From the sequence record MT708547.1: DNA of 64,000 bases; one strand, 5' to 3'. The notes under the pieces were generated by a model. That model had not been told where the DNA came from and did no database searches. It saw only the letters and a list, made by a program, of their open reading frames with translations. Shown piece after piece: positions 1 through 16,337 of the stretch; the first letter of the stretch is position 1; each line of letters opens with the position of its first letter. A program made the position numbers and the translations under genes.

Positions 1-17
1 AGTCCGTTTATAAAGTC

Positions 18-31
18 GCACCCAGTGGGCT
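18..31 (-). repeat. Short-RNA core element (AGCCC-ACT-GGGTGC on - strand) at extreme left end
   Basis: gcacccagtgggct = reverse complement of family core; promoter unclear. Confidence 0.6.
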
Positions 32-149
32 ACATTTGTAACTATTCAGTACTGAATAATTCAATGCATATATTATTTCAGTACTTAATCATTAGCAAAC
101 TATTAATTTCAATATCTCCTTTAGATAATATTTCGTATCTTATATTAAC

Positions 150-208
150 AAAAATCTGAATAGCATGTCAAGAAAAATCTGGATTACCAACGAGAAAAAA
201 TCTGGATT
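150..208. repeat. Three AAAAATCTG(G/A)AT(T) repeats (another at 989-1000)
   Basis: 150-161, 172-185, 194-208; core AATC-TG-GATT is an inverted repeat. Confidence 0.7.
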
Positions 209-270
209 TTAAAAATTTTGAAATGTCGTTTATAGTTCAGGAAAAAAATGAAATTATAACAAGAAAATTG

Positions 271-299
271 TTGACATGGATATGCTGCCATTATATAAT
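271..299 (+). promoter_or_regulatory. Consensus sigma70 promoter
   Basis: TTGACA-17-TATAAT. Confidence 0.9.
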
Positions 300-305
300 G
301 TAATC

Positions 306-720
306 CTCAAGACGAGAGAATGTTCTCTCATAGAAAATGCGAAGAAGCCGAGTTTATCTGTCCCTGCGTGAGTGGGCTAACATTTGAATAGGACAATACG
401 TAGATGAATGAAAAAGGTTTAAAGGGAAGTATTTGATTCCCTGTAGTATAGTTAATGAGTTAGTACTGATATAGTTTAATCATTGAGTACTACTGTCGCA
501 AAGGGAAACCTTTGGCTTCCATGGGGAGTGATGACAGAAGGGCATTATCCTCCATATAGAGTTACTGCGAATAACTCCATAAGTTGGGTTGTGGCAAACC
601 TCCTAAAATAGTGAATCTACAGTACTACTGCTTGGTAGTACTGCTTTTAATTTAAAGAATCCTCTCCGCCAAGAAAGGTGCATGTAACTTGAACATGTGA
701 ACTACGGGAACAGTACTGAA
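306..720 (+). ncRNA. Candidate ~400-nt structured ncRNA
   Basis: Perfect promoter, no ORF, many stems (GAGAGAA/TTCTCTC, GTAGTA/TACTAC, CAAAGG-GAAA-CCTTTG, GAGTTA/TAACTC, CAGTACTAC/GTAGTACTG). Confidence 0.55.
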
Positions 721-791
721 TTATTCAGTACTAATTCCTCCCCAAATTCTGGATACAATGATGCTAGGCTTCAGTTAGTACTGAGTGAGAA

Positions 792-901
792 TGATAATGA
801 TTCTCATTTGAATTGGATGAGAATGATTCTCATTTACTATTGCAAATGATAATAGATTGCATTTACGAATGGTTCTCATTCGCAGATGATAATGATTCTT
901 A
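792..901. promoter_or_regulatory. Cluster of 3 strong + 2 weak Fur-box-like sites
   Basis: TGATAAT-G-ATTCTCA 792-806, TGAGAAT-G-ATTCTCA 818-832, TGATAAT-G-ATTCTTA 887-901; weak 847, 864. Confidence 0.75.
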
Positions 902-929
902 TTTGAAATTGATTTTTCCGATTTTTCCC

Positions 930-995
930 ATTAGCCACCCTTCAGCGTAGGGTTAATTTTTCCCCTGCCGAATCGGTTTTATATTTTCAAAATCT
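930..995 (-). ncRNA. Short-RNA family copy A
   Basis: - strand TTGTTT-17-TATGAT (1030-1002); ACCCT-8nt-AGGGTGG core. Confidence 0.45.
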
Positions 996-1036
996 GGATT
1001 AATCATATCAGTACTAACCAAGATAAACAATACCCC

Positions 1037-1051
1037 TTTACAAATCTTTAC
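1037..1051. promoter_or_regulatory. TTTAC-N5-TTTAC box (CpxR/RstA-like)
   Basis: TTTACAAATCTTTAC = revcomp GTAAA-N5-GTAAA. Confidence 0.6.
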
Positions 1052-1077
1052 AAAAAGATTCTAAATGTGAATACAAA

Positions 1078-1092
1078 TGATAATGATTCTCA
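1078..1092. promoter_or_regulatory. Fur-box-like site
   Basis: TGATAAT-G-ATTCTCA. Confidence 0.75.
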
Positions 1093-1099
1093 TTTACAG

Positions 1100-1149
1100 T
1101 ACTGAATACTTTTTCCCACGCCCTGGCGTCTCCGGTTCCTCCCGTCTAT
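1100..1149 (-). ncRNA. Short-RNA family copy B
   Basis: - strand TTGACT-16-TATAAT (1183-1156); CGG-GAGGAA-CCG stem, divergent core CGCCAGGGCGTGGG. Confidence 0.5.
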
Positions 1150-1251
1150 ATAAACATTATACAGTACTGAATAATTAAGTCAATACTATTTTTGCAAAAA
1201 GATTAAAATAAAATACTTGCAATCCTGGTTAGTACTATATTATAATGTTTA

Positions 1252-1300
1252 CAGTACTGAGAAAGTGCTTTTGCCCGCTAGGGTGCTGGGGAGTATGCGT
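1252..1300 (+). ncRNA. Short-RNA family copy C
   Basis: TTGCAA-18-TATAAT (1217-1246); GCCC-GCTA-GGGTGC-N6-GTAT. Confidence 0.55.
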
Positions 1301-1304
1301 TAAA

Positions 1305-1319
1305 TGATAATGAGAATCA
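1305..1319. promoter_or_regulatory. Fur-box-like site between convergent copies C and D
   Basis: TGATAAT-G-AGAATCA. Confidence 0.65.
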
Positions 1320-1334
1320 TTTACAGTACTGGAC

Positions 1335-1370
1335 GGATTTTCCCACCCTCGGGGGTCTCTTTTTGTCTAT
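1335..1370 (-). ncRNA. Short-RNA family copy D
   Basis: - strand TTGATA-16-TATAAT (1404-1377); CCCC-GA-GGGTGG core. Confidence 0.5.
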
Positions 1371-1409
1371 GTAGTAATTATACAGTACTGAGATACTATA
1401 TCAAGTCTC

Positions 1410-1424
1410 TTTACAAATCTTTAC
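1410..1424. promoter_or_regulatory. TTTAC-N5-TTTAC box
   Basis: exact TTTACAAATCTTTAC. Confidence 0.6.
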
Positions 1425-1522
1425 AAAGCACCCGGGGAGATTTTTCTTTACAATAAAAGTACTTGCATAATTCTTTCAGTACTGACATAATGACTACATC
1501 AACCAATTAGGAGTATTACCAG

Positions 1523-1735
1523 ATGGCTACCATTACGACCCTGTTAAAAAATGCAAAAACTGTATTATTCAGTGATGACGAACATACCAACGTGGATATC
1601 ACTGGAGTTAAAAACCTGTTGGATATCAAAAAGATGTTTTCTATTCATGGCAAACTTACGCGTGTTGGCACGTTCGGAAATAAAGTATGTTACCGCCTTT
1701 CAAGTGATTATAATTTCACACTAACTTTACTGTAA
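1523..1735 (+). CDS. Hypothetical protein, paralog of C-terminal half of 4362-4721
   Basis: SD + promoter; LKNAKTVLFxDDE shared. Confidence 0.85.
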   Translation: MATITTLLKNAKTVLFSDDEHTNVDITGVKNLLDIKKMFSIHGKLTRVGTFGNKVCYRLSSDYNFTLTLL

Positions 1736-1798
1736 AAGTACTTGCATAATTCTTTCAGTACTACTATTATATATTCATACCAAAACAGGAGAACTACT

Positions 1799-1969
1799 AT
1801 GAAATATGCATACTCTTATTTTATTGTAAACGGTGAACGTTTGACCATCGGCCAGGCCGCTGTAAAACATGAAATCATTTGCGATGATCTGGCGAAGATG
1901 CTACCAGGTGAAACGCAAGAGTTTTACAAAGGCTTTCAGAAAGTCGTTGTAACACGTTGCGAAGATTGA
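1799..1969 (+). CDS. Hypothetical protein (56 aa)
   Basis: AGGAG SD before ATG 1799. Confidence 0.75.
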   Translation: MKYAYSYFIVNGERLTIGQAAVKHEIICDDLAKMLPGETQEFYKGFQKVVVTRCED

Positions 1970-2034
1970 TCCAGTACTTGGGGCGGAAACGCCCCTAAAA
2001 CGTCCTGTAACGCATTGTAAGAGGTTTTTATAAT

Positions 2035-2262
2035 ATGGCTATAGAAGTTAACGCTGGGGATATAAAGTCGGCTGTACTGCGTACCCTGAAAGCATACGGC
2101 AGAAAGCTGAATGATCGCAACGTTCCCTATTATTTCCTTGCTGCTACTCATAAAATGGCAATCGCTGAGGCTCGCGGGTGGTTGAATGATCGCAGTACTG
2201 TAAAGAGTACCAGAACAAGAAACGCAATTGAGCGATGGATAAAAGAATTAGAACATTTTTAA
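2035..2262 (+). CDS. Hypothetical protein
   Basis: ORF with GAGG SD, followed by terminator. Confidence 0.7.
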   Translation: MAIEVNAGDIKSAVLRTLKAYGRKLNDRNVPYYFLAATHKMAIAEARGWLNDRSTVKSTRTRNAIERWIKELEHF

Positions 2263-2282
2263 TAATTCAGTACTGAAATTAT

Positions 2283-2306
2283 AAGGGGAGTTAATTAATT
2301 CCCCTT
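2283..2306 (+). terminator. Hairpin terminator
   Basis: AAGGGGAG-TTAATTAA-TTCCCCTT. Confidence 0.55.
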
Positions 2307-2319
2307 TACAAATCTTTAC
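2305..2319. promoter_or_regulatory. TTTAC-N5-TTTAC box 10 nt upstream of -35
   Basis: exact match. Confidence 0.6.
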
Positions 2320-2363
2320 AAAAGAATGGTTGACATAGTATTCCAGTACTGGTATTATGTATT

Positions 2364-2415
2364 CATAGACAGAACAAGTCTTTGGCCCACCGGGTGCGGA
2401 GGAGTATATATTAGA
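2364..2415 (+). ncRNA. Short-RNA family copy E
   Basis: TTGACA-17-TATTAT (2330-2358); GAC-AGAACAA-GTC; GCCC-ACC-GGGTGC-N6-GTAT. Confidence 0.65.
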
Positions 2416-2420
2416 TTGAA

Positions 2421-2441
2421 TGAGAATGATAATGATTCTCA
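2421..2441. promoter_or_regulatory. Extended Fur-box-like site between convergent copies E and F
   Basis: TGAGAATGATAATGATTCTCA. Confidence 0.75.
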
Positions 2442-2451
2442 TTTACTGTAC

Positions 2452-2499
2452 TGAATATATTTCCGCACCCTTTTGGGCTTTTCGATTACTTTCTACTTG
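2452..2499 (-). ncRNA. Short-RNA family copy F
   Basis: - strand TTGCAT-16-TATACT (2533-2506); GCCC-AAAA-GGGTGC. Confidence 0.55.
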
Positions 2500-2538
2500 T
2501 TAATAAGTATACCATAATCAGTACTGAATGCAATGGTC

Positions 2539-2553
2539 TTTACAAATCTTTAC
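2539..2553. promoter_or_regulatory. TTTAC-N5-TTTAC box
   Basis: exact match. Confidence 0.6.
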
Positions 2554-2650
2554 AAAAGAAAATAATTATAAAAAGTACTGAAAAAGTACTTGACGCAATA
2601 ATGTAGTACTGGCATAATACATCCATACCAAACAGAACGGAGTAACTAAA

Positions 2651-2938
2651 ATGTTTAATGAAAATGATCATATTGTTAAAGAGTTTTCTTTCAGTAAGCC
2701 GATCCATTTAGAAAACGGTGAAACGCTGGACAATAAATTTTATGGTAGTATTATTAAGCGTTATACATCGCGGAGTAGTACTGGAATTTTGTGGGAAGTG
2801 AATAAACAGTACAATGGTAATTCGCTGGTTGTCAATGAGTGGGAAAGTTATGCAGTAGCTGAAATGGATTTTTCAAACTTCATTACTGAATCTTTGAACG
2901 ATGATATTTTTTACAAGTTCACGGCGGAAAGGGTTTAA
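2651..2938 (+). CDS. Hypothetical protein
   Basis: cassette promoter + GGAG SD. Confidence 0.85.
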   Translation: MFNENDHIVKEFSFSKPIHLENGETLDNKFYGSIIKRYTSRSSTGILWEVNKQYNGNSLVVNEWESYAVAEMDFSNFITESLNDDIFYKFTAERV

Positions 2939-3054
2939 AAAGTTTTAAAGAGTACTTGACAACATAAACCAGTACTGTATAATGTATTGCATAGAAAGGA
3001 GATTCCAGAATAATGGAATCTCCGATAAAATAAACTAATCAGGAGTTAATTACC

Positions 3055-3666
3055 ATGAACGTTATCGATACCATCTATTCTAAATCTTTCGATGAACTGA
3101 ATGCAGAGCAGAAAGAAAAAGCAATTGATATTATGCGGGATCTGGAACGTCACGATTCAGATCCATTCTGGGCACAATTAATTAATGAAGATAAACGCGA
3201 ATTAATGAATAATGAATATGGTTTTACTGATACTGTAATTCATTATAGCGGCTTTTGCTCACAAGGTGACGGGGCGTCAATTAGTACTGAATCAATCGAC
3301 GCAGAGACGTTTTTACGCAAAATTAAAGCATGGTCGAAATTCCGTGTATTGCATAAACATTTCAATGATGGTACAATTACATTAAAGATCGAACGCAACG
3401 ATCATCGTTATTCTCATGAAAATACTGTTTCTGGTGTGGTGGATCTGGACTACGGCACTGAATTCACTGCTAAAAAGGAAGAGAAAGCGGAAGAACTTGA
3501 AACGCTTTTGACTGAAACTATTCGTGATCTTTCACGCCAGCATTATCAGGTTCTGAGCGATGAAAACGATTATCAAAATAGTGATGAAGCATTGATTGAA
3601 TTGATTAATGCAAATGATTATAATTTCAAAGTGGATAGTACTGGTAACGTATTGGGGTTAGCGTAA
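3055..3666 (+). CDS. Acidic conserved phage protein (YSGFxSQGDGAS ... SDEAxxExIxANxYxF family)
   Basis: motifs recalled from a widespread phage/plasmid family often loosely annotated 'antitoxin'; function unproven. Confidence 0.6.
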   Translation: MNVIDTIYSKSFDELNAEQKEKAIDIMRDLERHDSDPFWAQLINEDKRELMNNEYGFTDTVIHYSGFCSQGDGASISTESIDAETFLRKIKAWSKFRVLHKHFNDGTITLKIERNDHRYSHENTVSGVVDLDYGTEFTAKKEEKAEELETLLTETIRDLSRQHYQVLSDENDYQNSDEALIELINANDYNFKVDSTGNVLGLA

Positions 3667-3960
3667 TGACTAAATTATATATTCGTTTCTGTTTTGCCTG
3701 GTACTTGTATAATCTACAAAATGGTTATACAGTGAAATAATATATATTTTTACTGATATACTGTAAAACGTCCTGTAAACGATTATGGGACGTTTTAAGG
3801 AATATTGGTACAATGTTAGTACTGAATGATTTAAAACGGCTTACAGTGGCTTACAGAGCGTTTAAAAAGTACTTGACGCAATAATGTAGTACTGGCATAA
3901 TTCATCTATACCAAATAGCAAAGGGAATCAGTACTGATTCCAATATAAGGAGTAACCAAA

Positions 3961-4275
3961 ATGAGTACTAAAGAACTGAATGTAACTACCAACACTTATA
4001 AGACGTTATGCGGGCGGTTGTTACGTGATTATTACACGGTCGAAATCGAAGAACGCGAATTACCCGAAGATAAACACTATTGGGAAAGTGGTGTGAGTCC
4101 TCTGTTACGGGTAACAACGTCTAAGCATGTTTTCTTTACTTCCCGTATTCATGTTAATAAGCGTGTTGAATTGACTTTCTCTTTCAGTGGTAGTTATAAA
4201 GATCATGAGATATTAAATGATCATATCGTTATTAGCAAATTTATTCAAATGTACGGGGCGGATTCTTTGCTTTAA
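3961..4275 (+). CDS. Hypothetical protein
   Basis: cassette promoter + SD. Confidence 0.85.
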   Translation: MSTKELNVTTNTYKTLCGRLLRDYYTVEIEERELPEDKHYWESGVSPLLRVTTSKHVFFTSRIHVNKRVELTFSFSGSYKDHEILNDHIVISKFIQMYGADSLL

Positions 4276-4361
4276 GTACTTGACAATGCGATCCAGTACT
4301 GTATAATGTATTACATCAAAGGGGATACATAGGGTATCCCTGATTTAAAGGAGTAGCGACT

Positions 4362-4721
4362 ATGCGAGCTTTTAACGTTTATAAGAATGACAAAAAAATT
4401 GACGTTGTTTATTATTCCGAAGTAATGACGGCAAAAGAAGTAACCGATTTGCTGAATAGCCGCGGTGAATACAACGGCGAAGTAAAAGCATTTCGGTCAT
4501 TGAATAGTGCGAATATTCGCACAGTACTGAAAAATGCTAAAACTGTTTTATTCAATGATGACGAATATTTTAATAAAGATGTTACGGGTATTAAAAACCT
4601 GGAAGATCTGAAAAGCCTTATTGGTATTAAAGGCAACGTATACAAAGTGGGGGAAGTCGGATCTCGCCATGAATATAAATTAGCTGGAAGTGATTATAAA
4701 TTTTCAATCCTGGTAATGTAA
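4362..4721 (+). CDS. Two-domain hypothetical protein
   Basis: N-term AFNVYKNxKxIDxVxY domain + paralog of 1523-1735. Confidence 0.85.
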   Translation: MRAFNVYKNDKKIDVVYYSEVMTAKEVTDLLNSRGEYNGEVKAFRSLNSANIRTVLKNAKTVLFNDDEYFNKDVTGIKNLEDLKSLIGIKGNVYKVGEVGSRHEYKLAGSDYKFSILVM

Positions 4722-4722
4722 T

Positions 4723-4926
4723 ATGAAAGTTTATATTTTGGAAGTGGAAGAATGTAATTCATATTCTTACAGTGGTACACTATCACGTGTGGAGGCGGTA
4801 TTTGCCAGCGAGAAAGAAGCCCACACTGCCGGGATTCAAAAAGTAAAAGAAGGCTATGAAGGTTATAGCGTCGATGCTTATGATATTCAGGGCGATCTTT
4901 CAGTACTGAAAAATATGTTGACATAG
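4723..4926 (+). CDS. Hypothetical protein
   Basis: directly follows upstream stop. Confidence 0.75.
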   Translation: MKVYILEVEECNSYSYSGTLSRVEAVFASEKEAHTAGIQKVKEGYEGYSVDAYDIQGDLSVLKNMLT

Positions 4927-4949
4927 TTTTTTGTTACTGTATAATAATT

Positions 4950-4974
4950 AGGGGATCAATCGATCCCCTTTTTT
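4950..4974. terminator. Hairpin terminator
   Basis: AGGGGATC-AATC-GATCCCCT-TTTTT. Confidence 0.8.
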
Positions 4975-5043
4975 GTTTCAGTACTTAATTAATAATAGAT
5001 ACACTACCGCACCCTATGGGTTAGTGCCTTGTGTCCGGCTTAT
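4950..5043 (-). ncRNA. Short-RNA family copy G
   Basis: - strand TTGACT-17-CATAAT (5078-5050); GCC-GGACACAA-GGC; ACCC-ATA-GGGTGC-N6-GTATCTA. Confidence 0.65.
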
Positions 5044-5089
5044 GTAGTTATTATGCCAGTACTGCGAATATAAGTCAATAGGTAGTTTT

Positions 5090-5104
5090 GTAAAGAAGTG
5101 TAAA
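5090..5104. promoter_or_regulatory. GTAAA-N5-GTAAA box 11 nt upstream of copy G -35
   Basis: GTAAAGAAGTGTAAA. Confidence 0.6.
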
Positions 5105-5307
5105 TGCACAGGAAGCATTGTAAGGCGTTAATCTGTTGCTGGTGGCTGATAGTATAGAGAAGTGTTTTAGATTGATTGTAGGCCGTTGTAGGCGTTTATG
5201 AATAGTAAAGTACTGATATTGTTTAATGATCCCGGTATGTGCAAATTATTTTAATTTTTTTCATATTAGGTATTGACGGATTGTGTCAGTACTGGCATAA
5301 TGTATCA

Positions 5308-5375
5308 CATAGAGCGACGGGCAAGACAAGTAGTCAACCTGTAAGACATACGAAAACCAGGTGACGTTGCACTGA
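5308..5375 (+). ncRNA. Candidate ~70-nt three-way-junction RNA
   Basis: TTGACG-17-CATAAT (5273-5301); GCGACG/CGTTGC enclosing GAC/GTC and ACCTG/CAGGT. Confidence 0.5.
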
Positions 5376-5442
5376 TTCAGTACTGAATAATACATAACAT
5401 CTAAATGTTGACAGTACTGAAAAAATGTAGTATAATGATTCA

Positions 5443-5585
5443 CAGAAAGAAGCAATCCAGTAAGCATGGATTAGTGATAAACGTAGACCGGAATCACGAA
5501 AAACTTTCAAGGAAATACCCTTATATAATAAGGGAAGCGTTAAGCGTAGAACGTAAACGCGAAAGTCCTAGCCTTGAACTGAAAA
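5443..5585 (+). ncRNA. Candidate ~140-nt multibranch RNA
   Basis: TTGACA-17-TATAAT (5408-5436); AATCCA/TGGATT, GTGAT/ATCAC, TTCAAGG/CCTTGAA enclosing CCCTTA/TAAGGG and GCGTT/AACGC. Confidence 0.6.
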
Positions 5586-5708
5586 AGTAAACAAGGTAAT
5601 TTAAGAAAAAAGATTTAAAAAAGTAGTTGACAAGTACTAACGAGAATGAGATAATCTCTCTCGTTGAAACAAACAAACAATCTTAATCAAAACTTAAAGG
5701 TGAATAAA

Positions 5709-6209
5709 ATGGCTAAACTGAATTCTGTTGTTGTTGCTCTGATCGCTGGTGATGTTGCTGCTCTGAATGCTTCTTTCGCGTCGGTATCGATGGAAGATAT
5801 GAAAACTGTTCGCAATAACTTTAACGAGTTTTACTCGAAGTTTAAAGCGGCAAATGAAGCGGCGGAAGCGGCTGCAAAAGAGCGTAAAGCACAGATCGAA
5901 ACCGAAACGAAAGCCCTGGTAGATGCCCTGGTAACTGCTGGCCTGGATCTGGAAATGGCCGCCGAAGTCGCCAGCCAGAAAATGGCGGTTAAATATCCCG
6001 AACTGGCCGCGAAGCCGGAAACTGGTAAATCCTGGTCGTTTGAAACGGTATTCGTTAACCTCGACGGCGAAAAACTGGAAATTGGCACTAAAGGCAACAA
6101 AGGCAGCATGAAAGCACTTAAAGCGGCACGCGACGCAATTGCTGCCGGCGAGTACAAAGATCGTGCTGAATGGATCGCCGCACACGCCTGGACTGAAACC
6201 GAAGCGTAA
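5709..6209 (+). CDS. H-NS/MvaT-like nucleoid-associated protein
   Basis: Ala/Glu coiled coil ending ALVTAGLDLE (H-NS MLIADGIDPNE-like); C-term GEKLEIGTKGNK (MvaT GEVIETKGGN-like); high-expression codons. Confidence 0.5.
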   Translation: MAKLNSVVVALIAGDVAALNASFASVSMEDMKTVRNNFNEFYSKFKAANEAAEAAAKERKAQIETETKALVDALVTAGLDLEMAAEVASQKMAVKYPELAAKPETGKSWSFETVFVNLDGEKLEIGTKGNKGSMKALKAARDAIAAGEYKDRAEWIAAHAWTETEA

Positions 6210-6230
6210 TAATTCAGTCCAGTAATAATT

Positions 6231-6254
6231 AGCCTCCTAATTGGAGGCTTTTTA
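6231..6254 (+). terminator. Rho-independent terminator
   Basis: AGCCTCC-TAATT-GGAGGCT-TTTT. Confidence 0.85.
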
Positions 6255-6344
6255 TTTTTGTTCAAAAAAATATTTTAATTTATTTTTTGAACGGATTTCA
6301 AAAATCAGGTATAATAATAAAGGGTGTTAATTACAAAGACCCCC

Positions 6345-6400
6345 ATAGTGTTCGCTACGCTCACATAATGATCTTACTCGTTGCACTCGTAAGATCATTA
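6345..6400. repeat. Hairpins with TTCGCTACGCT / TCGTTGCACTC loops
   Basis: perfect 12-bp stem TAATGATCTTAC/GTAAGATCATTA 6366-6400. Confidence 0.75.
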
Positions 6401-6826
6401 TCCAATCGGCCTTTGGCGATTTCTTTTTGATTTCCTACGGAAACCAAACGAAACCACCAGCAAAGGCATATCCCTTTATTTGATTTAGTTAGTACTGCGA
6501 TTAATTAGTAATTCATTGCACTACATAGCAATCAATTCCTTTTGTAATAACTCACAGGACGCAATAAGACGCGTTTAAATGACTTCCCTATGTAATGCCA
6601 TTCCTTTTTAATAAGTCCTCTCAAAACGCGTTATAGTGCGTTATACGGCGTTTTTATAATACTCATCATTTCTTTTTCAAAAAGTACTTGCATTAATGAT
6701 CCAGTACTGTAATAATGTACTCACTGAAACGCAGTAAGTGAAGTAAGTAAATGCAAATAAGTACTTGACAAAGTGTTATAGTACTGGCATAATGAATACA
6801 CCAAAACGATTAAGGAGAAACACCAA

Positions 6827-7300
6827 ATGTTAAAACTTCATAAAGTACTCGATAACGCTGTTGTAACCGACTTTTTCCTGTCTCTTAACAACGAACCGAA
6901 AACAGCAAAAGAAATTGTTTTGAGTGGTTACGTTGCCAGCAAGTCAGAGATCGCACATTTGGAAAGTGCTTTCAAGTCCGGTGATGCATTATACAAAAAA
7001 ATGCAAAATACCATAGAAGATTTGCAATATATCAATTTACGTGATATTGTAGACAATAAATTGGATATTTCAGAAGAAGCACGCGAGAAGCTGGTAAGTA
7101 AATTATGTTACCGCTGCCGAACTGCAAAATGGAATCGCATTCGTAGTATTATTACTTACGATTTAAGTAATATCGATTCCAAATCAATTCTTGAACGTAT
7201 GTTATTAAATTTGCAAAGCAATGAATGGTTTTATACCGCTGCTCAATCTCATAGCGAAGAAATTGCATATATTCGTGATTATGTAATTTACAGCAAGTAA
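6827..7300 (+). CDS. Hypothetical protein
   Basis: cassette promoter + SD. Confidence 0.85.
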   Translation: MLKLHKVLDNAVVTDFFLSLNNEPKTAKEIVLSGYVASKSEIAHLESAFKSGDALYKKMQNTIEDLQYINLRDIVDNKLDISEEAREKLVSKLCYRCRTAKWNRIRSIITYDLSNIDSKSILERMLLNLQSNEWFYTAAQSHSEEIAYIRDYVIYSK

Positions 7301-7373
7301 TTAATAATTGATTAGCCATCATTAAAGCTGGTGGCTAACAGAATATTAATAACCTGTTGGGAGAATAATCTTT

Positions 7374-7643
7374 ATGAAAGGTATTAGTACTTTAATTGAT
7401 GCAAATACCCGCGTAGCTCGTTCAATGGTTGCTACGTCATTACGTGAATATACTGCAAGCGGGTATTTAGTATTCGCCGTAAATGGCAAATTGCAAGAAC
7501 GTAGAATAGCATTCAGTACTAAAGAGAATTGCCGTTATATTGTATTCAAGAAAGAAGCATACAAGATAGATTTACCAGCTAAACCGATCTCAGGCGGTTA
7601 CAATGTTGAAAGCCTTTATGAAAGGCCACCGTATACTGCGTAG
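7374..7643 (+). CDS. Hypothetical protein
   Basis: GGAG SD. Confidence 0.8.
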   Translation: MKGISTLIDANTRVARSMVATSLREYTASGYLVFAVNGKLQERRIAFSTKENCRYIVFKKEAYKIDLPAKPISGGYNVESLYERPPYTA

Positions 7644-7752
7644 AATCGATTTTGAGCGACTTTAATAAAAATATAGGGAATCATACTGATACCCGTTTAA
7701 AACAGTGTAGAAAGGCGTATAACGCGTTATACGCCGTAAGGGAGTGGATTCT

Positions 7753-7923
7753 GTGAAGCGTGAACAAGCTTTATTAACGCCAGAAGAGGCCCGCCGCTAT
7801 GAAATGTTTTCAAACCAGGAAACGATCAAAGCGGCACAATATAACCCGGTTGCTTGTACAGTACAAAGAAAAAATTTTGTACTGAATGAAGTAGAAAGTA
7901 TTATCAAATCAAATAAGGAGTAA
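7753..7923 (+). CDS. Hypothetical protein (56 aa, GTG start; not in ORF track)
   Basis: AAGGGAG SD, open to TAA 7921. Confidence 0.55.
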   Translation: MKREQALLTPEEARRYEMFSNQETIKAAQYNPVACTVQRKNFVLNEVESIIKSNKE

Positions 7924-7928
7924 ACACT

Positions 7929-8201
7929 ATGCAAAATAACCGCCCAATGATAAGAAATATGCTTTTCGTATTCCAGAAAAAAGTTAATGTAACTTCGGTA
8001 AATGGTGAACGTAAATTAAATGCGGCATTCGCCAAATATACACAAAGCAAAAACATCCATTACTTTTATCTTACTCTGAATGAGTTTAATGATCTGGTAA
8101 AAGAAATGTTTGTCAGTACTGAAATTGTTGCACCTGTAAGCACTGATATCATTCTAAAAGAATGGGAAAGTTTTTACAAAAGTTCTGTTGTAATCGCTTG
8201 A
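7929..8201 (+). CDS. Hypothetical protein
   Basis: AAGGAG SD. Confidence 0.85.
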   Translation: MQNNRPMIRNMLFVFQKKVNVTSVNGERKLNAAFAKYTQSKNIHYFYLTLNEFNDLVKEMFVSTEIVAPVSTDIILKEWESFYKSSVVIA

Positions 8202-8255
8202 CAACATAATCCAGTACTGGCATAATAACTACATAGACCACAAAGGAGAAACATA

Positions 8256-8435
8256 ATGGAAACTGTAATTGCTACTACCAAAATCAATGGACTGGATAAT
8301 GAAGTTTCATTGATTCATAAACAAAGCACATATGTTGTGTCATATGGTCACTATAGAACCTATCATGACACCATCAATGAAGCTTTTGTGGATTATATGA
8401 AAGCAATTGAAATTGCCTATGATGATTATCGTTAA
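8256..8435 (+). CDS. Hypothetical protein (59 aa; not in ORF track)
   Basis: cassette promoter + AAGGAG. Confidence 0.75.
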   Translation: METVIATTKINGLDNEVSLIHKQSTYVVSYGHYRTYHDTINEAFVDYMKAIEIAYDDYR

Positions 8436-8518
8436 AAGTACTTGCTTTAATCATTCAGTACTGTATAATGTATTACATCAAAGGGAATGAATGATTCATT
8501 CCCACATAACCAGGAGTA

Positions 8519-8881
8519 ATGACTATGTTTGATAAAGTTTTATTTTCTGATAACACCTCTGAAACCGAGATCCCGGAAGCGGTAAAAGCTTTTGCTCAAT
8601 TAGTTGCCCAGCGTCAAACTGATAATTACGACGGGCCTTATTCTTTCCTTACTGAGATTAGTAAAGGCAAAAAGTTTATTAAACTTATTCGCCGCGAGAA
8701 GTGGAAAGATAACGGACAATTAACAGGCGGATCGGTATTTGCCTTTATTGATCCCGATGGTAACATTTACAAATCAGCGACAGCTAAAGCACCAGCTAAA
8801 GGCATTCGCGGAAATGTTAACATCAACGGCGGCGGCGATGCAATCGGGCGTGATGGTTATATTCGTTACTTTCGTAATTGA
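8519..8881 (+). CDS. Conserved phage hypothetical protein (GKKFIK..SVFAFID..GNIYKxAxxKAPAKG.RGN family)
   Basis: motif common in T4-like phages; function unknown. Confidence 0.8.
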   Translation: MTMFDKVLFSDNTSETEIPEAVKAFAQLVAQRQTDNYDGPYSFLTEISKGKKFIKLIRREKWKDNGQLTGGSVFAFIDPDGNIYKSATAKAPAKGIRGNVNINGGGDAIGRDGYIRYFRN

Positions 8882-8932
8882 CAAATCTTTACAAATCCAG
8901 GGGTTGACTTCGGTCGCCCCTTTTGTTATTAT
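8878..8932 (+). promoter_or_regulatory. TTGAC-N5-TTTAC box + terminator/promoter hybrid
   Basis: GGGGTTGAC-TTCG-GTCGCCCC-TTTT containing TTGACT-17-TATTAT. Confidence 0.8.
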
Positions 8933-8937
8933 ATATT

Positions 8938-8995
8938 CATACCACAGAGCAAGTGGTTTAGCCCACAGGGTGCCGAGATGTATCTATAGTTTAAT
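8938..8995 (+). ncRNA. Short-RNA family copy H
   Basis: ACCAC-AGAGCAA-GTGGT; GCCC-ACA-GGGTGC-N6-GTATCTATAGTTT. Confidence 0.7.
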
Positions 8996-9039
8996 GATTT
9001 GAAGTACTGAAAAATAATTATAAAAAGTACTTGTTAGAC

Positions 9040-9061
9040 GTGAATTCTTTTAAGAATTCAC
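9040..9061. repeat. Perfect 10-bp palindrome inserted in promoter cassette
   Basis: GTGAATTCTT-TT-AAGAATTCAC. Confidence 0.8.
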
Positions 9062-9120
9062 TTGTATTTGTGATTCAGTACTGATATTATATATTCATAC
9101 CAATTAAGGAGATTATCCAA

Positions 9121-9282
9121 ATGAATACACAATATGTACCGGTGATGAATATCACTATCGGAAATGGTAAAGGTATGCATCGATTCAGTACTACAAAAAG
9201 TTATACTCAGCGTACATTAGAATCATGTGCAATTACCAAATGGCAAATAAAACATTACTTTACTACGGACAAGAAAAATTGA
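9121..9282 (+). CDS. Hypothetical protein (53 aa; not in ORF track)
   Basis: cassette promoter + AAGGAG. Confidence 0.65.
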   Translation: MNTQYVPVMNITIGNGKGMHRFSTTKSYTQRTLESCAITKWQIKHYFTTDKKN

Positions 9283-9391
9283 TTAAAAAAGTATTGACTG
9301 CGATACTCAAGTACTGTATTATAACTGGTATAGCGTTTGCACTAGCAGTAACCGTGGTTTTTGGTACTGTAATTATATTGGGGAACATATC

Positions 9392-9697
9392 ATGATTAAA
9401 AATATTGATGCATTCAATAAAGCATATCTTTATACCAGTACTTTTCGGAATAGCGAAGGAGATCCGGTTGAATTTAAAAATGTAGTACTGATCCGGCCTG
9501 GGTTCGATATTATTCATATCTCGAATACCTGGAATCAAGCTGCGGGCAATCGCTACACTATTGATAAAGAAATTTCAATAGAAGAAGCGTTAAAACTTCC
9601 ATCATTGCCGGATCGCTTATCCCTGGCTAGTCGTGTGGAACTGGTAGGCGATACTGCACAATATATTACGCATGAGTATGAATTTAAGTACCTATAA
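9392..9697 (+). CDS. Hypothetical protein
   Basis: ORF with purine-rich SD. Confidence 0.75.
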   Translation: MIKNIDAFNKAYLYTSTFRNSEGDPVEFKNVVLIRPGFDIIHISNTWNQAAGNRYTIDKEISIEEALKLPSLPDRLSLASRVELVGDTAQYITHEYEFKYL

Positions 9698-10073
9698 GTA
9701 CTTGACAATATAATTCAGTACTGTATAATGTATTACATCAAAGGGGATACATAGTGTATCCCCAATTAACAGGAGTAACCCATATGTCTAGTATCGTTAT
9801 TAATGAAACCTTATTATCTGTTACTTATGATGATGCGAGTATTTTTCCTGGTAATGATTATGGGTATGAAATTCCCGTAAAAGTTGAACTCGATCAAAGT
9901 GTCGGCAATCCCGATGATATTAAACGCACTATGGTGGTTAAAATTGGTGATATCACTTTATTGCCCAGTGATATTGATCATATCAAAAGTATGATTGATC
10001 GTGCAAATAATATCGCTGAAACCTTCAAATAAGTACTTGACAATATAATTCAGTACTGTATAATGTATTACAT
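9694..10073 (+). repeat. 45-bp perfect direct repeats (9694-9738, 10029-10073) flanking one gene
   Basis: ataagtacttgacaatataattcagtactgtataatgtattacat x2. Confidence 0.9.
9784..10032 (+). CDS. Hypothetical protein
   Basis: AGGAG SD. Confidence 0.85.
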   Translation: MSSIVINETLLSVTYDDASIFPGNDYGYEIPVKVELDQSVGNPDDIKRTMVVKIGDITLLPSDIDHIKSMIDRANNIAETFK

Positions 10074-10125
10074 AGAAAAGAGATTCCAGTACTGGAATCT
10101 CTAAGATAACCCAAGGAGATTAAAA

Positions 10126-10314
10126 ATGGCAGTAGTATACGGTTATATCAGCAACTATGATTTGACTTTCCGGGAAGTCGGTACTGAATTAGGTGCAAAG
10201 AATGCAGCAACGCGAAACGGCTCGACCCGCGTAGGATATCGCAGTAGTATTAATAATATGTATATTGAAACGCATATCCGCAACGATAAAAAGGGTAAAT
10301 GGGAAAAAGTGTAA
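10126..10314 (+). CDS. Hypothetical protein
   Basis: AAGGAG SD. Confidence 0.85.
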   Translation: MAVVYGYISNYDLTFREVGTELGAKNAATRNGSTRVGYRSSINNMYIETHIRNDKKGKWEKV

Positions 10315-10324
10315 TCTAATTCCA

Positions 10325-10339
10325 TTTACAAATCTTTAC
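10325..10339. promoter_or_regulatory. TTTAC-N5-TTTAC box 11 nt upstream of -35
   Basis: exact match. Confidence 0.6.
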
Positions 10340-10384
10340 AAAACCAGTACTTGATTTAATTATTGAGTACTGGTATTATATATT

Positions 10385-10437
10385 CATTGGCAGATAAGCC
10401 GCAGCCCACAGGGTGCCGAGATGTATCTATAGTTTAT
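10385..10437 (+). ncRNA. Short-RNA family copy I
   Basis: TTGATT-17-TATTAT (10351-10379); GGC-AGATAA-GCC; GCCCACAGGGTGCCGAGATGTATCTATAGTTT. Confidence 0.7.
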
Positions 10438-10704
10438 TGAATTGAAGTACAGAAAAATATTTCTTGCATAATTCATTTCTTATGATATAATAGTAATCAC
10501 ATAAATTAATTGGAGTGAACAAAAATGTTATTAGATTGGCTCAATACTTTATCCCCTGCCGCTGGCCGTCGCTGGGCTATCGGTTCGTCGGTTGCCATCG
10601 TTGTAGGCGTCATTGTACTTTTAGTGATGATTTTCTAAAAAGTACTTGCTTTAATGATTCAGTACTGTATAATGTACTTATACCAAATAACAGGAGTAAA
10701 ACCG

Positions 10705-11022
10705 ATGAAAGATGTAACTTTACCAGTAGTTCAAACTAACTTTGAAAACCAATTCCTGGCCGAAGTGTTCAAGATTGATAATGGCGTTGTATCAATCAAT
10801 TACGGTTTCAATAGCGGCGGTTATGAAAAATTCATTTATTTCGTTACTGCCGATGGTGGATGCCTGGCAATTGATACAGTACTGAATGAATTCAGTAAAG
10901 TAGATTTTAATGATGATAATGATCCTCAGTGGTATATCGTCGGCTATGACGTGAACTATGAAGATGAAGATCTTTATGATGATCATACTAATCAAAAAAT
11001 TGAATCTGCTTATGGGGAATAA
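10705..11022 (+). CDS. Acidic conserved phage protein (GGY..YFVTADGGxL..WYIVGYDVNYED..SAY)
   Basis: SD at 10692; acidic C-terminus. Confidence 0.8.
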   Translation: MKDVTLPVVQTNFENQFLAEVFKIDNGVVSINYGFNSGGYEKFIYFVTADGGCLAIDTVLNEFSKVDFNDDNDPQWYIVGYDVNYEDEDLYDDHTNQKIESAYGE

Positions 11023-11339
11023 AAATGATCATCGTACTATCAGAGAAAGAAAAGAAATTAATTCTTTCAGTACTGAAAGAATATCCCAGAAATATGCGGG
11101 AGCCGTTTGAAACAAATGGTGAATTCGAAGAGCATTTAAACGATATCGATTTATTGATATCCAAGATTGAATCACAATAGTGATGTACTGTAAAACGTCC
11201 TGTAATCGATTATGGGACGTTTTAAGGAATAGCACTATGATTTATTCAGTACTGTAAAAAAACGCTTGAAAATTGATTCCAGTACTGTATAATGTTTTAC
11301 ATAGGAAAATTATTCTCCCCATTATTAGGAATAAAGAAT

Positions 11340-11567
11340 ATGTTTTATCTTGGAACTGTTAAAGAAAATTCGAATGTAATTGAGGCGTCATTGATTTGTA
11401 CTAATAATGAAGTCGCTGGCTATGATTTTGCAAAAGAGCGATTCATGAAATATTACACTGGTGATAATTCAGTGTCATTCGATTTTGAACGTATCGGTGA
11501 TGGTGTTACAATTATGAAATTTGAAGATCTCCCTGAAATCGATTTTGATTTTGTCGTTACACTGTAA
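11340..11567 (+). CDS. Hypothetical protein
   Basis: cassette promoter. Confidence 0.75.
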   Translation: MFYLGTVKENSNVIEASLICTNNEVAGYDFAKERFMKYYTGDNSVSFDFERIGDGVTIMKFEDLPEIDFDFVVTL

Positions 11568-11666
11568 AAAAAGTACTTGCATAATTCTTTCAGTACTGTA
11601 TACTGTACTTATACCAAACAAAAGCAAATGGAATCAGTACTGATTCCCTGTAAAGGAGATAGACCA

Positions 11667-11918
11667 ATGTCAGATCGTATCACTCGCAAAATGGTAGCAG
11701 ATAAAGTTGCTGGGCTGAATCTTGCTATTGACCGTCGTGGATTGCCTGAAAAATATCAGGTAGTACTGGAAGATGGTAAATTCAATATTGAATTACAGCC
11801 GTCTCATGTTTATACTAAACCAACAGCGGTACAAAAGTATTTGAGTACACGAGAAGCATATTTTTATCTTAAAGGTATGTTTCAAATTCTTCTCGACAAT
11901 GTACCACATAAAGATTAA
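11667..11918 (+). CDS. Hypothetical protein
   Basis: AAGGAG SD. Confidence 0.85.
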   Translation: MSDRITRKMVADKVAGLNLAIDRRGLPEKYQVVLEDGKFNIELQPSHVYTKPTAVQKYLSTREAYFYLKGMFQILLDNVPHKD

Positions 11919-11920
11919 AG

Positions 11921-11951
11921 AAAAAGGGGAGACAATGAGTCTCCCTTTTTT
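11921..11951. terminator. Bidirectional terminator
   Basis: A-tract-GGGAGAC-loop-GTCTCCC-T-tract. Confidence 0.85.
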
Positions 11952-12020
11952 GTATTCAGTACTATATATATTTTAGATACAATTTGGCACCCTGTGGGTT
12001 AGTAGCTTGTTCTGCTTTAT
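11925..12020 (-). ncRNA. Short-RNA family copy J
   Basis: - strand TTGACA-17-TATAAT (12055-12027); AGC-AGAACAA-GCT; ACCC-ACA-GGGTGC-N6-GTATCTA; ends at bidirectional terminator. Confidence 0.75.
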
Positions 12021-12146
12021 GTAGTAATTATATGATAAAGCTGGTGGCTTGTCAACACTTATTTTAAAATAAAAAGTACTGAATAGTACTTGCAAAAAGT
12101 ATTCAGTACTGTATAATGTTTATATTGAGATTAAGGAGTACTGACT

Positions 12147-12686
12147 ATGTTAATCAAAATGTATCACGGTTCTAATAATTTTGATCATCGCCGTGGATAT
12201 CTGGGCGGAAAACCAGGTAATTTTCATATGGGTTTTGGACTATATCTAACTAACTCTTATCGCTGGGCTGATAATTATGGGCGACGTCATTATGAGTTAG
12301 ATTTAGATCTTTGTAGTACTGGTGCCGCACATAATGTATGGATTCCTACTAAACACTTTATGGAATTCATAAGAGTATATTGTACTAAAAAGTTTTTTAC
12401 AATGTGCTGTAAAGAATTTAAAGACCGTGAATCTTTGAATGTAGAACGCGTTGAATTGCTTATTATCAATATGGAAAGGCATGTTACTAAAATCGCTAAA
12501 CCATTTGCTGAATTCGTCGCCGCCTGGGGTTGTACGCATAGCATTGAAATATCCGGTAACTATGGTGGTGTTTGCTTGCGGCTTTATGATTTCAGTACTA
12601 TAAAGAATTGTATCATAAGCCAGGAAACGCAAGATTTTTATTATCCAGATGAATTGACAAGATATCCTCAAAAAAACTTGTATTAA
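12147..12686 (+). CDS. Putative ADP-ribosyltransferase-fold protein
   Basis: MYHGS..F..G.GLYLTN...A..YG pattern of H-Y class ARTs. Confidence 0.5.
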   Translation: MLIKMYHGSNNFDHRRGYLGGKPGNFHMGFGLYLTNSYRWADNYGRRHYELDLDLCSTGAAHNVWIPTKHFMEFIRVYCTKKFFTMCCKEFKDRESLNVERVELLIINMERHVTKIAKPFAEFVAAWGCTHSIEISGNYGGVCLRLYDFSTIKNCIISQETQDFYYPDELTRYPQKNLY

Positions 12687-12737
12687 TGATTCAGTACTGA
12701 TATAATGTATTAAATTAATCAGGAGGAATTATCTTAA

Positions 12738-12866
12738 ATGAATAACCGTCAATTGATGATCGATGCATCTCGTTTTCGTTCAAAAGAAGAAAAGAGAAGT
12801 TGCATTAAATGGGTTTTGTCAACTTTCATTATTGGATTACTTATTGTTGCTTTTGTTTATAGTTAG
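12738..12866 (+). CDS. Small membrane protein (42 aa; not in ORF track)
   Basis: AGGAGG SD; C-terminal hydrophobic helix. Confidence 0.65.
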   Translation: MNNRQLMIDASRFRSKEEKRSCIKWVLSTFIIGLLIVAFVYS

Positions 12867-13246
12867 TACTTGACAACTGATTTCAGTACTGTATAATGTT
12901 TATCAAAGGGAATGAATAATTCATTCCCAAATAATCAAAGGAGTTTTGCCATGATCTATATTATCAAAGTATCCCCGACTGTAGGCAAATCAGAAGTTGT
13001 AGCCGTCATCACTTCCCTGGAAGCGAAAGATCTTCATACGCCGTTTAATGTATGGGTGGAGGATAATTTCGGCCAATTCAGTACTGCTGAATATATCGAA
13101 CAATTCGCCGTACCGGATACTGGTAAAATCAAAGTGGATCGTATCCTGGATTTTGATAACAGTAATTATTTTTAAAAGTACTTGACAACTGATTTCAGTA
13201 CTGTATAATGTTTATCAAAGGGAATGAATAATTCATTCCCAAATAA
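12865..13246 (+). repeat. 70-bp perfect direct repeats (12865-12934, 13177-13246) flanking one gene
   Basis: identical promoter+hairpin cassette. Confidence 0.9.
12951..13175 (+). CDS. Hypothetical protein
   Basis: AAGGAG SD. Confidence 0.85.
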   Translation: MIYIIKVSPTVGKSEVVAVITSLEAKDLHTPFNVWVEDNFGQFSTAEYIEQFAVPDTGKIKVDRILDFDNSNYF

Positions 13247-13262
13247 ACAAAGGAGTTTTATC

Positions 13263-13409
13263 ATGAAAGAATATATCTTTGAGGTAACTTTCACCTTCGG
13301 CCCGCATCAACTGATCCGCTCTTCTGGTTATAACCGCGAACAAGCATTCAGCAACCTTCGCCGTATGTACCCCAGTGTCGTGACCTGGGTCAAATGTGAA
13401 GAAGCATAA
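13263..13409 (+). CDS. Hypothetical protein (48 aa)
   Basis: AAGGAG SD. Confidence 0.75.
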   Translation: MKEYIFEVTFTFGPHQLIRSSGYNREQAFSNLRRMYPSVVTWVKCEEA

Positions 13410-13489
13410 AATAATTAGTCAGTACTATTGACAACGCGTGATAGTACTGCTATAATTATTTTAACTTATACGGAATGGAGTTAAAACAA

Positions 13490-13726
13490 ATGTTCAGTGT
13501 CAGCAAACAAGGCGACAAATTTCTGGTTCAATACCATCATTTTGATCTGGTATACACTCAGCCAGATTGTGTATTCAGTACTCAGGAAGGTGCCGAAAAG
13601 CACAAAAAAGCCTTGATCGAAAATAGCAACAGTGGTACATTAGATTTCATCCAACAGTACTGGAATGAATCTAAGCTGCTGGATGGATATTCCAATACAG
13701 TTTATTATGTAGGCATGACTGATTAA
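13490..13726 (+). CDS. Hypothetical protein
   Basis: GGAG SD. Confidence 0.8.
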   Translation: MFSVSKQGDKFLVQYHHFDLVYTQPDCVFSTQEGAEKHKKALIENSNSGTLDFIQQYWNESKLLDGYSNTVYYVGMTD

Positions 13727-13828
13727 TCGGGAGTACTGCTAATGTATATACCAATTATCATACCGTTAGCAGTACTGTTAATCGCCGCCGTCATCTGCGA
13801 ACATTATCATTTGTTAGGAATGTAAACT

Positions 13829-13999
13829 ATGATTCAATGTGAATTGTCAGTACTGATCACGCTGTTCTATATGTTGGGACAAAAGAAACAATATATTTCT
13901 GGTGATAATGCATTATTGTATCAATCATTAGACCAATGGCAACGCACTGAATTAAGCAATGCATGGGCGAAAGGTTACAACGATAGTACTGCAAAATAA
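13829..13999 (+). CDS. Hypothetical protein (56 aa; not in ORF track)
   Basis: AGGA SD. Confidence 0.5.
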   Translation: MIQCELSVLITLFYMLGQKKQYISGDNALLYQSLDQWQRTELSNAWAKGYNDSTAK

Positions 14000-14008
14000 T
14001 TTAAAAAA

Positions 14009-14041
14009 GGGGTTGACACAGGTCAGCCCTTTTGTTATTAT
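14009..14041 (+). promoter_or_regulatory. Terminator/promoter hybrid
   Basis: GGGGTTGAC-ACAG-GTCAGCCC-TTTT containing TTGACA-17-TATTAT. Confidence 0.8.
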
Positions 14042-14046
14042 TAGTA

Positions 14047-14100
14047 CATAGCAAGAACAATGCTCAAGCCCACAGGGTGCCGAAGTGTATCTATAGTTTA
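14047..14100 (+). ncRNA. Short-RNA family copy K
   Basis: AGCA-AGAACAA-TGCT; GCCC-ACA-GGGTGC-N6-GTATCTATAG. Confidence 0.7.
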
Positions 14101-14218
14101 TGTAGTACTGAATCATTAATTTTTCTTGACAATTGGTTTAGTACTGGATATAATAGCCGCCATTGAATACAGAACGGGAAATTAGTACTAATTTCCCTTA
14201 CAGGAGGATTTTAAAAAA

Positions 14219-14485: not shown

Positions 14486-14580
14486 GTACTTGACTATGTG
14501 ATTCAGTACTGTATACTGTACTTATACCAAACAAAAGTAAAGGGAATCAGTACTGATTCCCTGTAAAGGAGATAGACCAA

Positions 14581-15044: not shown

Positions 15045-15056
15045 GGAATAATAATC

Positions 15057-16314: not shown

Positions 16315-16337
16315 AATCTGACTATTACAGTACTAAC

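Follow-up and report, generated by a model that had tools for sequence, protein, structure and literature searches.

Klebsiella phage Muenster (MT708547.1) is a RaK2-like jumbo phage of the genus Alcyoneusvirus with a genome of 346,937 bp. Its left end carries an array of palindromes that are well supported, on the evidence of their sequences, as operators of the Fur type, and iron-loaded Fur (holo-Fur) can very likely bind them. The window analysed here comprises bases 1-64000 of this genome, to which it is 100% identical over the 4 kb compared. Eight boxes were found, all within 784-2446, at a distance of 0.8-2.4 kb from the physical left end, where genes are almost absent; the first convincing coding sequence (CDS) starts at 1523. 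Five of the boxes form a tandem array (784-906) with a spacing of 20-29 bp, and the others stand singly at 1073-1097, 1300-1324 and 2419-2446. The record marks 1-20030 as a terminal repeat (a PhageTerm prediction), so that the boxes belong to the left repeat of Muenster and, like the rest of that repeat, are present twice per virion genome. An initial annotation of this DNA had proposed at least eight Fur-box-like sites; we recover six strong and two weak ones, the positions that it gave being the starts of a 15-bp inverted repeat. Its placement of the boxes in gene-free DNA is right for the boxes generally and fails for box 7, which overlaps an annotated CDS, CPT_Muenster_001, that is probably no gene.

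All Fur scans used the 19-bp consensus taken from PMC3145626, and consensus matching served in place of a weight matrix, with the E. coli ent-fep operators as positive controls; Table 3 of PMC3212961 holds predicted weak sites only and offered no basis for a Fur matrix. Against this consensus the strong boxes score 14-16/19 and the weak boxes 12/19. Every one of the five 16/19 matches in the 64-kb window falls in 787-2446, where 0.11 would be expected in the window, and none of 100 shuffles reached five. Similarly, 780-2450 holds 5 separate clusters of at least 15/19 as compared to 0.02 in 300 dinucleotide shuffles, which places the observation well above chance. The 7-1-7 inverted repeat TGAGAATNATTCTCA, with up to two mismatches allowed, occurs 8 times in 64 kb against an expectation of 0.73; the matches in this region start at 792, 818 (perfect, 818-832), 887, 1078, 1311 and 2427, the others having one or two mismatches. 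In the E. coli K-12 enterobactin cluster (24 kb) the three Fur-controlled intergenic regions score 13, 16, 15 and 15/19, and no other site in the rest of that cluster reaches 15/19. The 12/19 of the weak boxes is within the range of the two functional sci1 boxes, which match the consensus at 11 and 13/19 (PMC3145626). Chance is excluded as an explanation for the Fur-consensus matches, and their scores equal or exceed those of true E. coli operators.

The internal structure of the boxes is likewise that of Fur sites. Box 1 (784-812), the first of the tandem array, is a 25-bp near-palindrome with matches at 787-805 (16/19) and 793-811 (15/19), and box 2 (816-837; 15/19) contains the perfect 7-1-7 repeat TGAGAAT-G-ATTCTCA at 818-832. 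Boxes 3 (842-866, two matches 6 bp apart) and 4 (865-883) are the weak ones, each at 12/19, and correspond to the sites near 847 and 864 that had already been described as weaker; box 5 (882-906), the last of the array, has matches at 882, 885 and 888 (13-14/19). Among the single boxes, box 6 (1073-1097) scores 14 and 16/19, box 7 (1300-1324) scores 16/19, and box 8 (2419-2446) is a 25-bp palindrome with 11 of 12 arm pairs and two 16/19 matches. The strong boxes are thus pairs of matches exactly 6 bp apart (787/793, 1073/1079, 1300/1306 and 2422/2428), while the overlapping matches of box 5 are offset by 3 bp, and overlapping sites 6 (or 3) bp apart are the architecture of Fur site clusters (PMC2189734). 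The features that Fur recognises are a conserved G, one or two T's and a minor groove that is narrow and AT-rich (PMC4506495); the phage boxes have all of these, their half-sites retaining the G and the T/A tract. With enterobacterial operator clusters such as fepD-entS and fepB-entC the phage arrays share a 19-bp AT-rich palindrome, 6-bp offsets, an extent of 30-140 bp and scores of 13-16/19. They differ from these clusters in lying off promoters with no gene downstream, in having five boxes in tandem and two between convergent promoters, in being more symmetric than the host operators, and in carrying GAGAAT hexamers in place of the consensus GATAAT, although the E. coli fepB operator contains the same GAGAAT half-site.

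Since the phage boxes consistently have GAGAAT where the consensus has GATAAT, we searched for the GAGAAT form directly in bacteria, using one genome per bacterial species. The query, AATGAGAAT-N-ATTCTCATT, is a symmetrised box 2 that differs from 816-834 by one base and whose 15-bp core is exact in the window. It was found at at least 120 bacterial loci from very different phyla, often in GC-rich genomes, and 102 of the 121 sites listed are outside any open reading frame (ORF) of more than 150 codons. Twenty large flanking ORFs included seven TonB-dependent receptors, five FeoB proteins, two ECF sigma factors and one each of an Fe2+ transport protein, a PepSY_TM protein and a ZnuA-type binding protein; with these as seeds, a neighbour of such a type was present at 26 of the 120 loci among the matches listed. 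Forty further flanking ORFs, taken in list order, included four iron-type solute-binding proteins, HemS, ChuX, an FTR1 permease and two FUR-family regulators beside the palindrome; an operator ahead of fur is a typical sign of autoregulation. The enrichment of iron genes in these neighbourhoods is plain but qualitative, because there was no matched background control and the first 20 ORFs were picked by size, which favours large genes. Nevertheless, the consensus scores resembling those of host operators, together with the occurrence of the core near bacterial iron genes, lend support to the Fur-box identity first proposed for these sites.

Promoters of the sigma-70 type are predicted close to the boxes, and none of them is on a box. 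A leftward promoter at 1183-1156 (minus strand; TTGACT-16-TATAAT) reads into box 6, which lies about 52 nucleotides (nt) after its predicted start at 1149. Box 7 is the centre of a convergent unit, flanked by a promoter at 1217-1246 (plus strand; TTGCAA-18-TATAAT), which is kept in three genera, and by one at 1404-1377 (minus strand; TTGATA-16-TATAAT), whose -10 and start region do not vary among 7 genomes from three genera; the box is 50 and 47 nt from the respective predicted starts at 1253 and 1370. Box 8 is similarly placed 54 and 55 nt from convergent predicted starts at 2365 and 2501, belonging to a promoter at 2330-2358 (plus strand; TTGACA-17-TATTAT with TG) and a weaker promoter-like site at 2533-2506 (minus strand; TTGCAT-16-TATACT). 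Boxes 7 and 8 each occupy the middle of a long inverted repeat that lies between the converging promoters. In all five single-box arms the distance from predicted sigma-70 start to box is therefore regular (47-55 nt); the promoter arms are paralogous copies, and three of the predicted transcripts share their first six bases. A further sigma-70-like promoter, of perfect consensus (TTGACA-17-TATAAT), is found at 271-299 on the plus strand. None of these six overlaps a box, the sole promoter-like overlap being a weak 9/12 minus-strand match at 2432-2403. As the initial annotation had stated, then, the boxes avoid the strong promoters, and its picture of transcripts converging head-on agrees with the predicted promoters, +1217/-1404 flanking box 7 and +2330/-2533 flanking box 8.

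Its further suggestion, that the boxes occupy the 3' ends of short RNAs, is only approximate: they do follow the predicted starts by 47-55 nt, but the predicted plus-strand terminators lie beyond them. On the plus strand a terminator-like hairpin with a T-run at 937-963 (hairpin 937-953) comes 31 nt after the tandem array, and box 7 is followed 16 nt later by another, at 1340-1365 (hairpin 1340-1355). A long imperfect inverted repeat (2384-2479, 96 nt), which has box 8 as its apex, forms a hairpin on both strands, with a folding z of -6.5 on both as compared to shuffles and a U-run after it on the plus strand. The boxes are in general AT-rich islands between GC-rich arms, situated upstream of terminator-like sites or at a hairpin apex, with the plus-strand hairpins 15-45 nt beyond them. 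Because these plus-strand terminator-like sites follow the boxes, the boxes are predicted to lie within the short transcripts and not at their ends. The unit 1253-1370 round box 7 has no folding advantage over shuffled sequence (z = -1.4 to -1.6), the arms of the long stem vary too little across genera for covariation to be informative, and Rfam covariance models gave only two sub-threshold, chance-level matches in 1-6000.

More conventional roles for the boxes were considered and rejected. A classical Fur-repressed promoter does not fit, as the operator is not on the -35/-10 of strong promoters and no regulated conserved gene follows; the boxes are not themselves promoters, as no convincing -35/-10 overlaps any of them; and a type I toxin-antitoxin (small toxic peptide) reading of the convergent units fails because ORFs starting in the boxes are not conserved. 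CPT_Muenster_001 (1304-1456, plus strand) has its start ATG within box 7; its frame stops after 9 codons in Salmonella phage PHA46 and has no start codon in Asteriusvirus, and for these reasons it is probably no gene. We found no conservation of it outside the genus and no conserved ORF downstream of the boxes. In K64-1 some twenty tiny ORFs are annotated over the same region, and these, like the CDS across box 7, are probably not genes.

The boxes are conserved across six Alcyoneusvirus genomes. All of them recur in RaK2, K64-1, RCIP0023 and OU509535, and in KP13-7, the most divergent, the tandem array and boxes 7 and 8 are kept and box 6 is missing. Indeed, the five tandem boxes of KP13-7 are almost unchanged while the DNA to their right is unalignable. 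In the complete RaK2 record box 8 finds six places by BLAST, a number equal to that of its strong boxes, and this count is the sole hint that the boxes may be limited to the left-end region. Between Muenster and its relatives the two hexamers of box 7 are exchanged, which preserves the 16/19 match to the Fur consensus and alters the potential hairpin, and thereby favours recognition by a protein over RNA pairing. In the sister genus Asteriusvirus (121Q-like) the same convergent unit is found at the same distance from the left end with its promoters and GC-rich arms conserved, but the 4-6 kb examined contains no Fur box, and the apex carries a different motif that is repeated upstream too. PHA46 combines the two motif types, and its array and apex are Fur-like. 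The convergent unit is older than the boxes, and their absence from Asteriusvirus shows that box function is an add-on and not the core of the module. At the box positions Asteriusvirus has ATTTTGGGCGTA-type motif repeats and a tandem GGCTAGA/GGCTAAACGG array, whereas PHA46 carries this kind and the Fur-like kind; in the Escherichia phage vB_Ec-M-J locus the ATTTTGGGCGTA-type/GGCTAAACGG motifs are at 720-920, 1078-1098 and 1296-1312, and they also occur at 2715-2760 of another compared locus.

Essentially the same element occurs in unrelated phages. Of 835 phage records matched by a 30-nt query over box 8, 523 are matched along 80% or more of the query. Most of the matches are T5-like phages (about 105-120 kb), in which 27 or 28 of 28 positions are identical and several copies are present per genome, usually 9-10 kb from the left end and inside the terminal repeat. 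The annotation of T5 (AY587007) lists these boxes, which score 15/19 and 16/19, as 'direct repeat C copies 1-4' and 'palindromes E-I' (9468-9637). This stretch is 'Repeat Region 3', a candidate injection-stop signal; the function of its repeats was called impossible to guess, and the shear point of the first step was calculated to be approximately 9618 (10.1101/866236). That position falls in a 16/19 box. The same paper makes no mention of Fur, LexA or iron, and in one T5-like record this stretch bears the label 'similar to DNA injection stop signal'. The T5 terminal repeat has two more Fur-consensus matches, at 228-252 and 4174-4192 of the compared T5 locus, one at 16/19 inside dmp and one at 15/19 in a short intergenic interval ahead of A2. 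Salmonella phage Sepoy has four boxes beside consensus DnaA boxes; at 2620-2740 of that locus (the reverse complement of 9.5-9.6 kb) two DnaA boxes and a 20-bp perfect palindrome, which we take to resemble an SOS (LexA) box, adjoin them. Seven tandem boxes are present in non-coding DNA of Phapecoctavirus phiWec188, and an uncultivated viral contig has three perfect copies with a 30-bp period just upstream of two strong promoter-like sites. By hand count the palindrome is no more than 400 bp from a contig end in 13 of 42 whole viral contigs, as compared to roughly 10% expected, so that the arrays either break assemblies or sit near true termini.

Repeat Region 3 of T5 resembles the Muenster stretch in that essentially the same box is repeated in tandem in untranslated DNA of a long direct terminal repeat, and in both phages the array is 0.5-0.8 kb from a repeat boundary. 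The T5 array, however, is at the right edge of its repeat and that of Muenster at the left, and the T5 array adjoins DnaA boxes, DRD repeats and the 7.9% nick, with DRE repeats in the candidate injection-stop signal. T5-style DnaA boxes were rejected for Muenster, 1-6000 having no match to TTWTNCACA (consensus from 10.1101/866236). The initial annotation knew of no Fur-operator array at a phage genome end. Such repeats had in fact already been annotated in T5, and hundreds of T5-like and Phapecoctavirus genomes share the element, but within our incomplete coverage of the literature we found no paper naming them Fur boxes and no description of Fur boxes in T5 or in RaK2-like jumbo phages; the T5 repeats have long been known, but apparently were not recognised for what they resemble.

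Which protein would read these boxes? A tblastn search with the E. coli protein detected no Fur homologue in Alcyoneusvirus, T5-like phages or Phapecoctavirus, and any Fur on the boxes would accordingly come from the host. A DNA-binding protein shared among the phages was rejected as a candidate: no A1/A2 homologue was detected in Muenster, T5 A2 homologues were found only in T5-like phages, and none of the ORFs in the Muenster repeat truly matches anything at the loci of T5, Sepoy and phiWec188. Gene 004 of Muenster, annotated with sigma-like hits, was rejected as well, since Pfam gave no match and the loci of PHA46, the T5-like phages and Phapecoctavirus contain no homologue of it. With near-identical boxes in unrelated lineages and no phage protein found in common within the stretches compared, a host factor would be the simplest common reader.

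We propose that the boxes, situated in a leader of the terminal repeat that is non-coding and rich in promoters, bind iron-loaded host Fur. When iron is present, Fur dimers, about 11-14 per repeat copy as counted from consensus windows, would assemble on the boxes into a protein-DNA block acting in cis, by which early non-coding transcription would be halted or insulated; the block would also mark this stretch of the terminal repeat, maybe for a DNA transaction, and it would dissolve without iron. We give an even chance to the central claim, that host Fur forms a cis-acting complex that blocks or insulates transcription at the boxes; both the occupancy of phage DNA by Fur in vivo and the effect of its binding are what we infer from sequence. 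A transcriptional roadblock is our first choice because of the regular placement of the boxes at +47 to +55, and promoter occlusion is excluded by their position off the promoters. In a protein roadblock to elongation a repressor is bound within the transcription unit, and the likeness to such cases is that the operator is tens of nt past the start, here a predicted one, and not on the promoter. We know of no described case of Fur acting as a transcription roadblock.

Several observations speak against this proposal. In E. coli 83% of Fur clusters overlap promoters, which the boxes here do not; convergent RNA polymerases would run into each other even if nothing blocked them; and the plus-strand terminator-like hairpins after the boxes could end the RNAs alone. 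Asteriusvirus keeps the convergent unit without a Fur box, and the array is missing from a Vibrio T5-like phage that has an A2 homologue, from which it follows that the boxes are dispensable for the basic module. The choice of flanking ORFs in the bacterial search, moreover, favoured large genes.

The boxes could instead be Fur decoys, by which multiplying phage DNA soaks up host Fur and derepresses iron uptake for iron-dependent phage enzymes. We consider this unlikely, although the sites are many, score highly, avoid promoters and are carried twice per virion genome. A cell contains several thousand molecules of Fur, and 11-14 dimer sites per repeat copy multiplied by hundreds of genome copies come into that range; a single incoming genome, however, cannot titrate Fur, so that the effect would be confined to late infection. 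Promoter-less Fur boxes on replicating DNA can derepress the chromosomal Fur regulon, as in the Fur titration assay (FURTA; PMC3145626). That titration is a laboratory effect of high-copy plasmids, and no natural phage decoy was found in the literature searched. Moreover, the same arrays occur in T5-like phages, and the literature on T5 describes pre-early genes that destroy host DNA within minutes, early in infection, so that derepression of the host cannot be the purpose of the T5 arrays. A decoy also needs no fixed position, whereas the boxes hold a regular place with respect to promoters and inverted repeats. As a common explanation titration is weak, though the numbers would permit it late in infection. 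Alternatively, a DNA transaction of the terminal repeat might be served by Fur, or by the boxes with Fur as cofactor, such as an entry pause, the cutting or duplication of the repeat at packaging, or a fork barrier, and this too strikes us as unlikely. It would accord with the position of the T5 boxes within the candidate injection-stop region and of the shear point in one of them, with the label in the T5-like record, with the closeness of the T5 and Muenster arrays to a repeat boundary, and with the palindromes near contig ends. The T5 shear point is only approximate, however, the Phapecoctavirus array need not be near a terminus, and the Vibrio T5-like phage without an array, which may or may not inject in two steps, has A2, whose neighbour gene is labelled 'DNA transfer protein'.

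We regard as quite improbable that another protein, from the phage or the host, binds the boxes and that their likeness to Fur sites is incidental. The preference for GAGAAT over GATAAT, a symmetry above that of host operators, the patchy distribution among phages and the ease with which small DNA-binding proteins can escape tblastn would suit such a binder; however, the GAGAAT form is itself found at bacterial iron genes and fur genes as well as in the fepB operator, and no protein is common to the Muenster repeat and the T5, Sepoy and phiWec188 loci, A2 being confined to T5-like phages. Nor is there much probability that the palindromes act as structure, whether as tips of RNA hairpins, as parts of terminators or as the AT-rich unwinding element of a transcription-primed origin. 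The 96-nt hairpin with box 8 at its apex, strongly folded on both strands and followed by a U-run on the plus strand, and the AT-rich islands between GC-rich arms would be expected of such elements, but the unit round box 7 folds like its shuffles, the five tandem boxes are outside any such hairpin, and the hexamer swap in box 7 preserves the Fur match and not the pairing. AT-richness, furthermore, does not explain 16/19 matches or 28/28 identity with unrelated phages, and in Asteriusvirus the apex is filled by an unrelated motif.

The leader and the rest of the repeat have further features. Transcription from the promoter at 271-299 would run for about 340 nt without an ORF and then meet a terminator-like hairpin at 620-643 (unit 271-653); a leftward terminator-like site is at 678-661, and a promoter followed by a hairpin occupies the equivalent place in Asteriusvirus and PHA46; the unit has no Rfam match. 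TTTACAAATCTTTACAAAA, a 10-bp-phased direct repeat of a -35-like hexamer, has four copies (1034-1055, 1407-1428, 2302-2323 and 2536-2557), usually after a terminator and before a promoter, and could be an UP-like element or another protein site. AAAAATCTGGATT-type motifs are repeated at 151-210, at the extreme left end, and at 744-756 and 988-1001, flanking the array; related 'AAATCT...GGA' repeats are found at the left ends of Asteriusvirus and PHA46. The hexamer AGTACT is present in 272 copies in 1-64000, as compared to about 21 expected from base composition and to 0-35 copies each for other palindromic hexamers of similar composition, and is densest in 1-20000. It belongs to the design of the early promoters, in which it immediately precedes both the -10 and the -35, and this element is common to Muenster, Asteriusvirus and PHA46 promoters; CAGTACTG has 82 copies in the window. 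Gene 011 (5709-6206, plus strand), annotated 'putative DNA-binding protein', matches the H-NS N-terminal oligomerisation domain PF22470 (25.5 bits, cut-off 24.5), and possibly encodes an H-NS mimic or antagonist within the terminal repeat.

Fur boxes are textbook promoter operators, and the arrays described here are promoter-less, placed in terminal non-coding DNA and conserved in at least three unrelated lineages of virulent phages. Tentatively, and with a probability that we put rather low, several unrelated large virulent phages of enterobacteria (RaK2-like, T5-like and Phapecoctavirus) may have independently acquired or exchanged arrays of optimal Fur operators in non-coding terminal DNA, and may use host Fur there as an iron-gated structural cofactor. 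If this were true, Fur would be a component of the T5 injection-stop region, whose palindromes have been unexplained since 1987. If Fur does bind, the early events of these phages would be wired to the iron status of the host by a route other than promoter occlusion, and the T5 injection-stop repeats would gain a concrete, testable candidate ligand.

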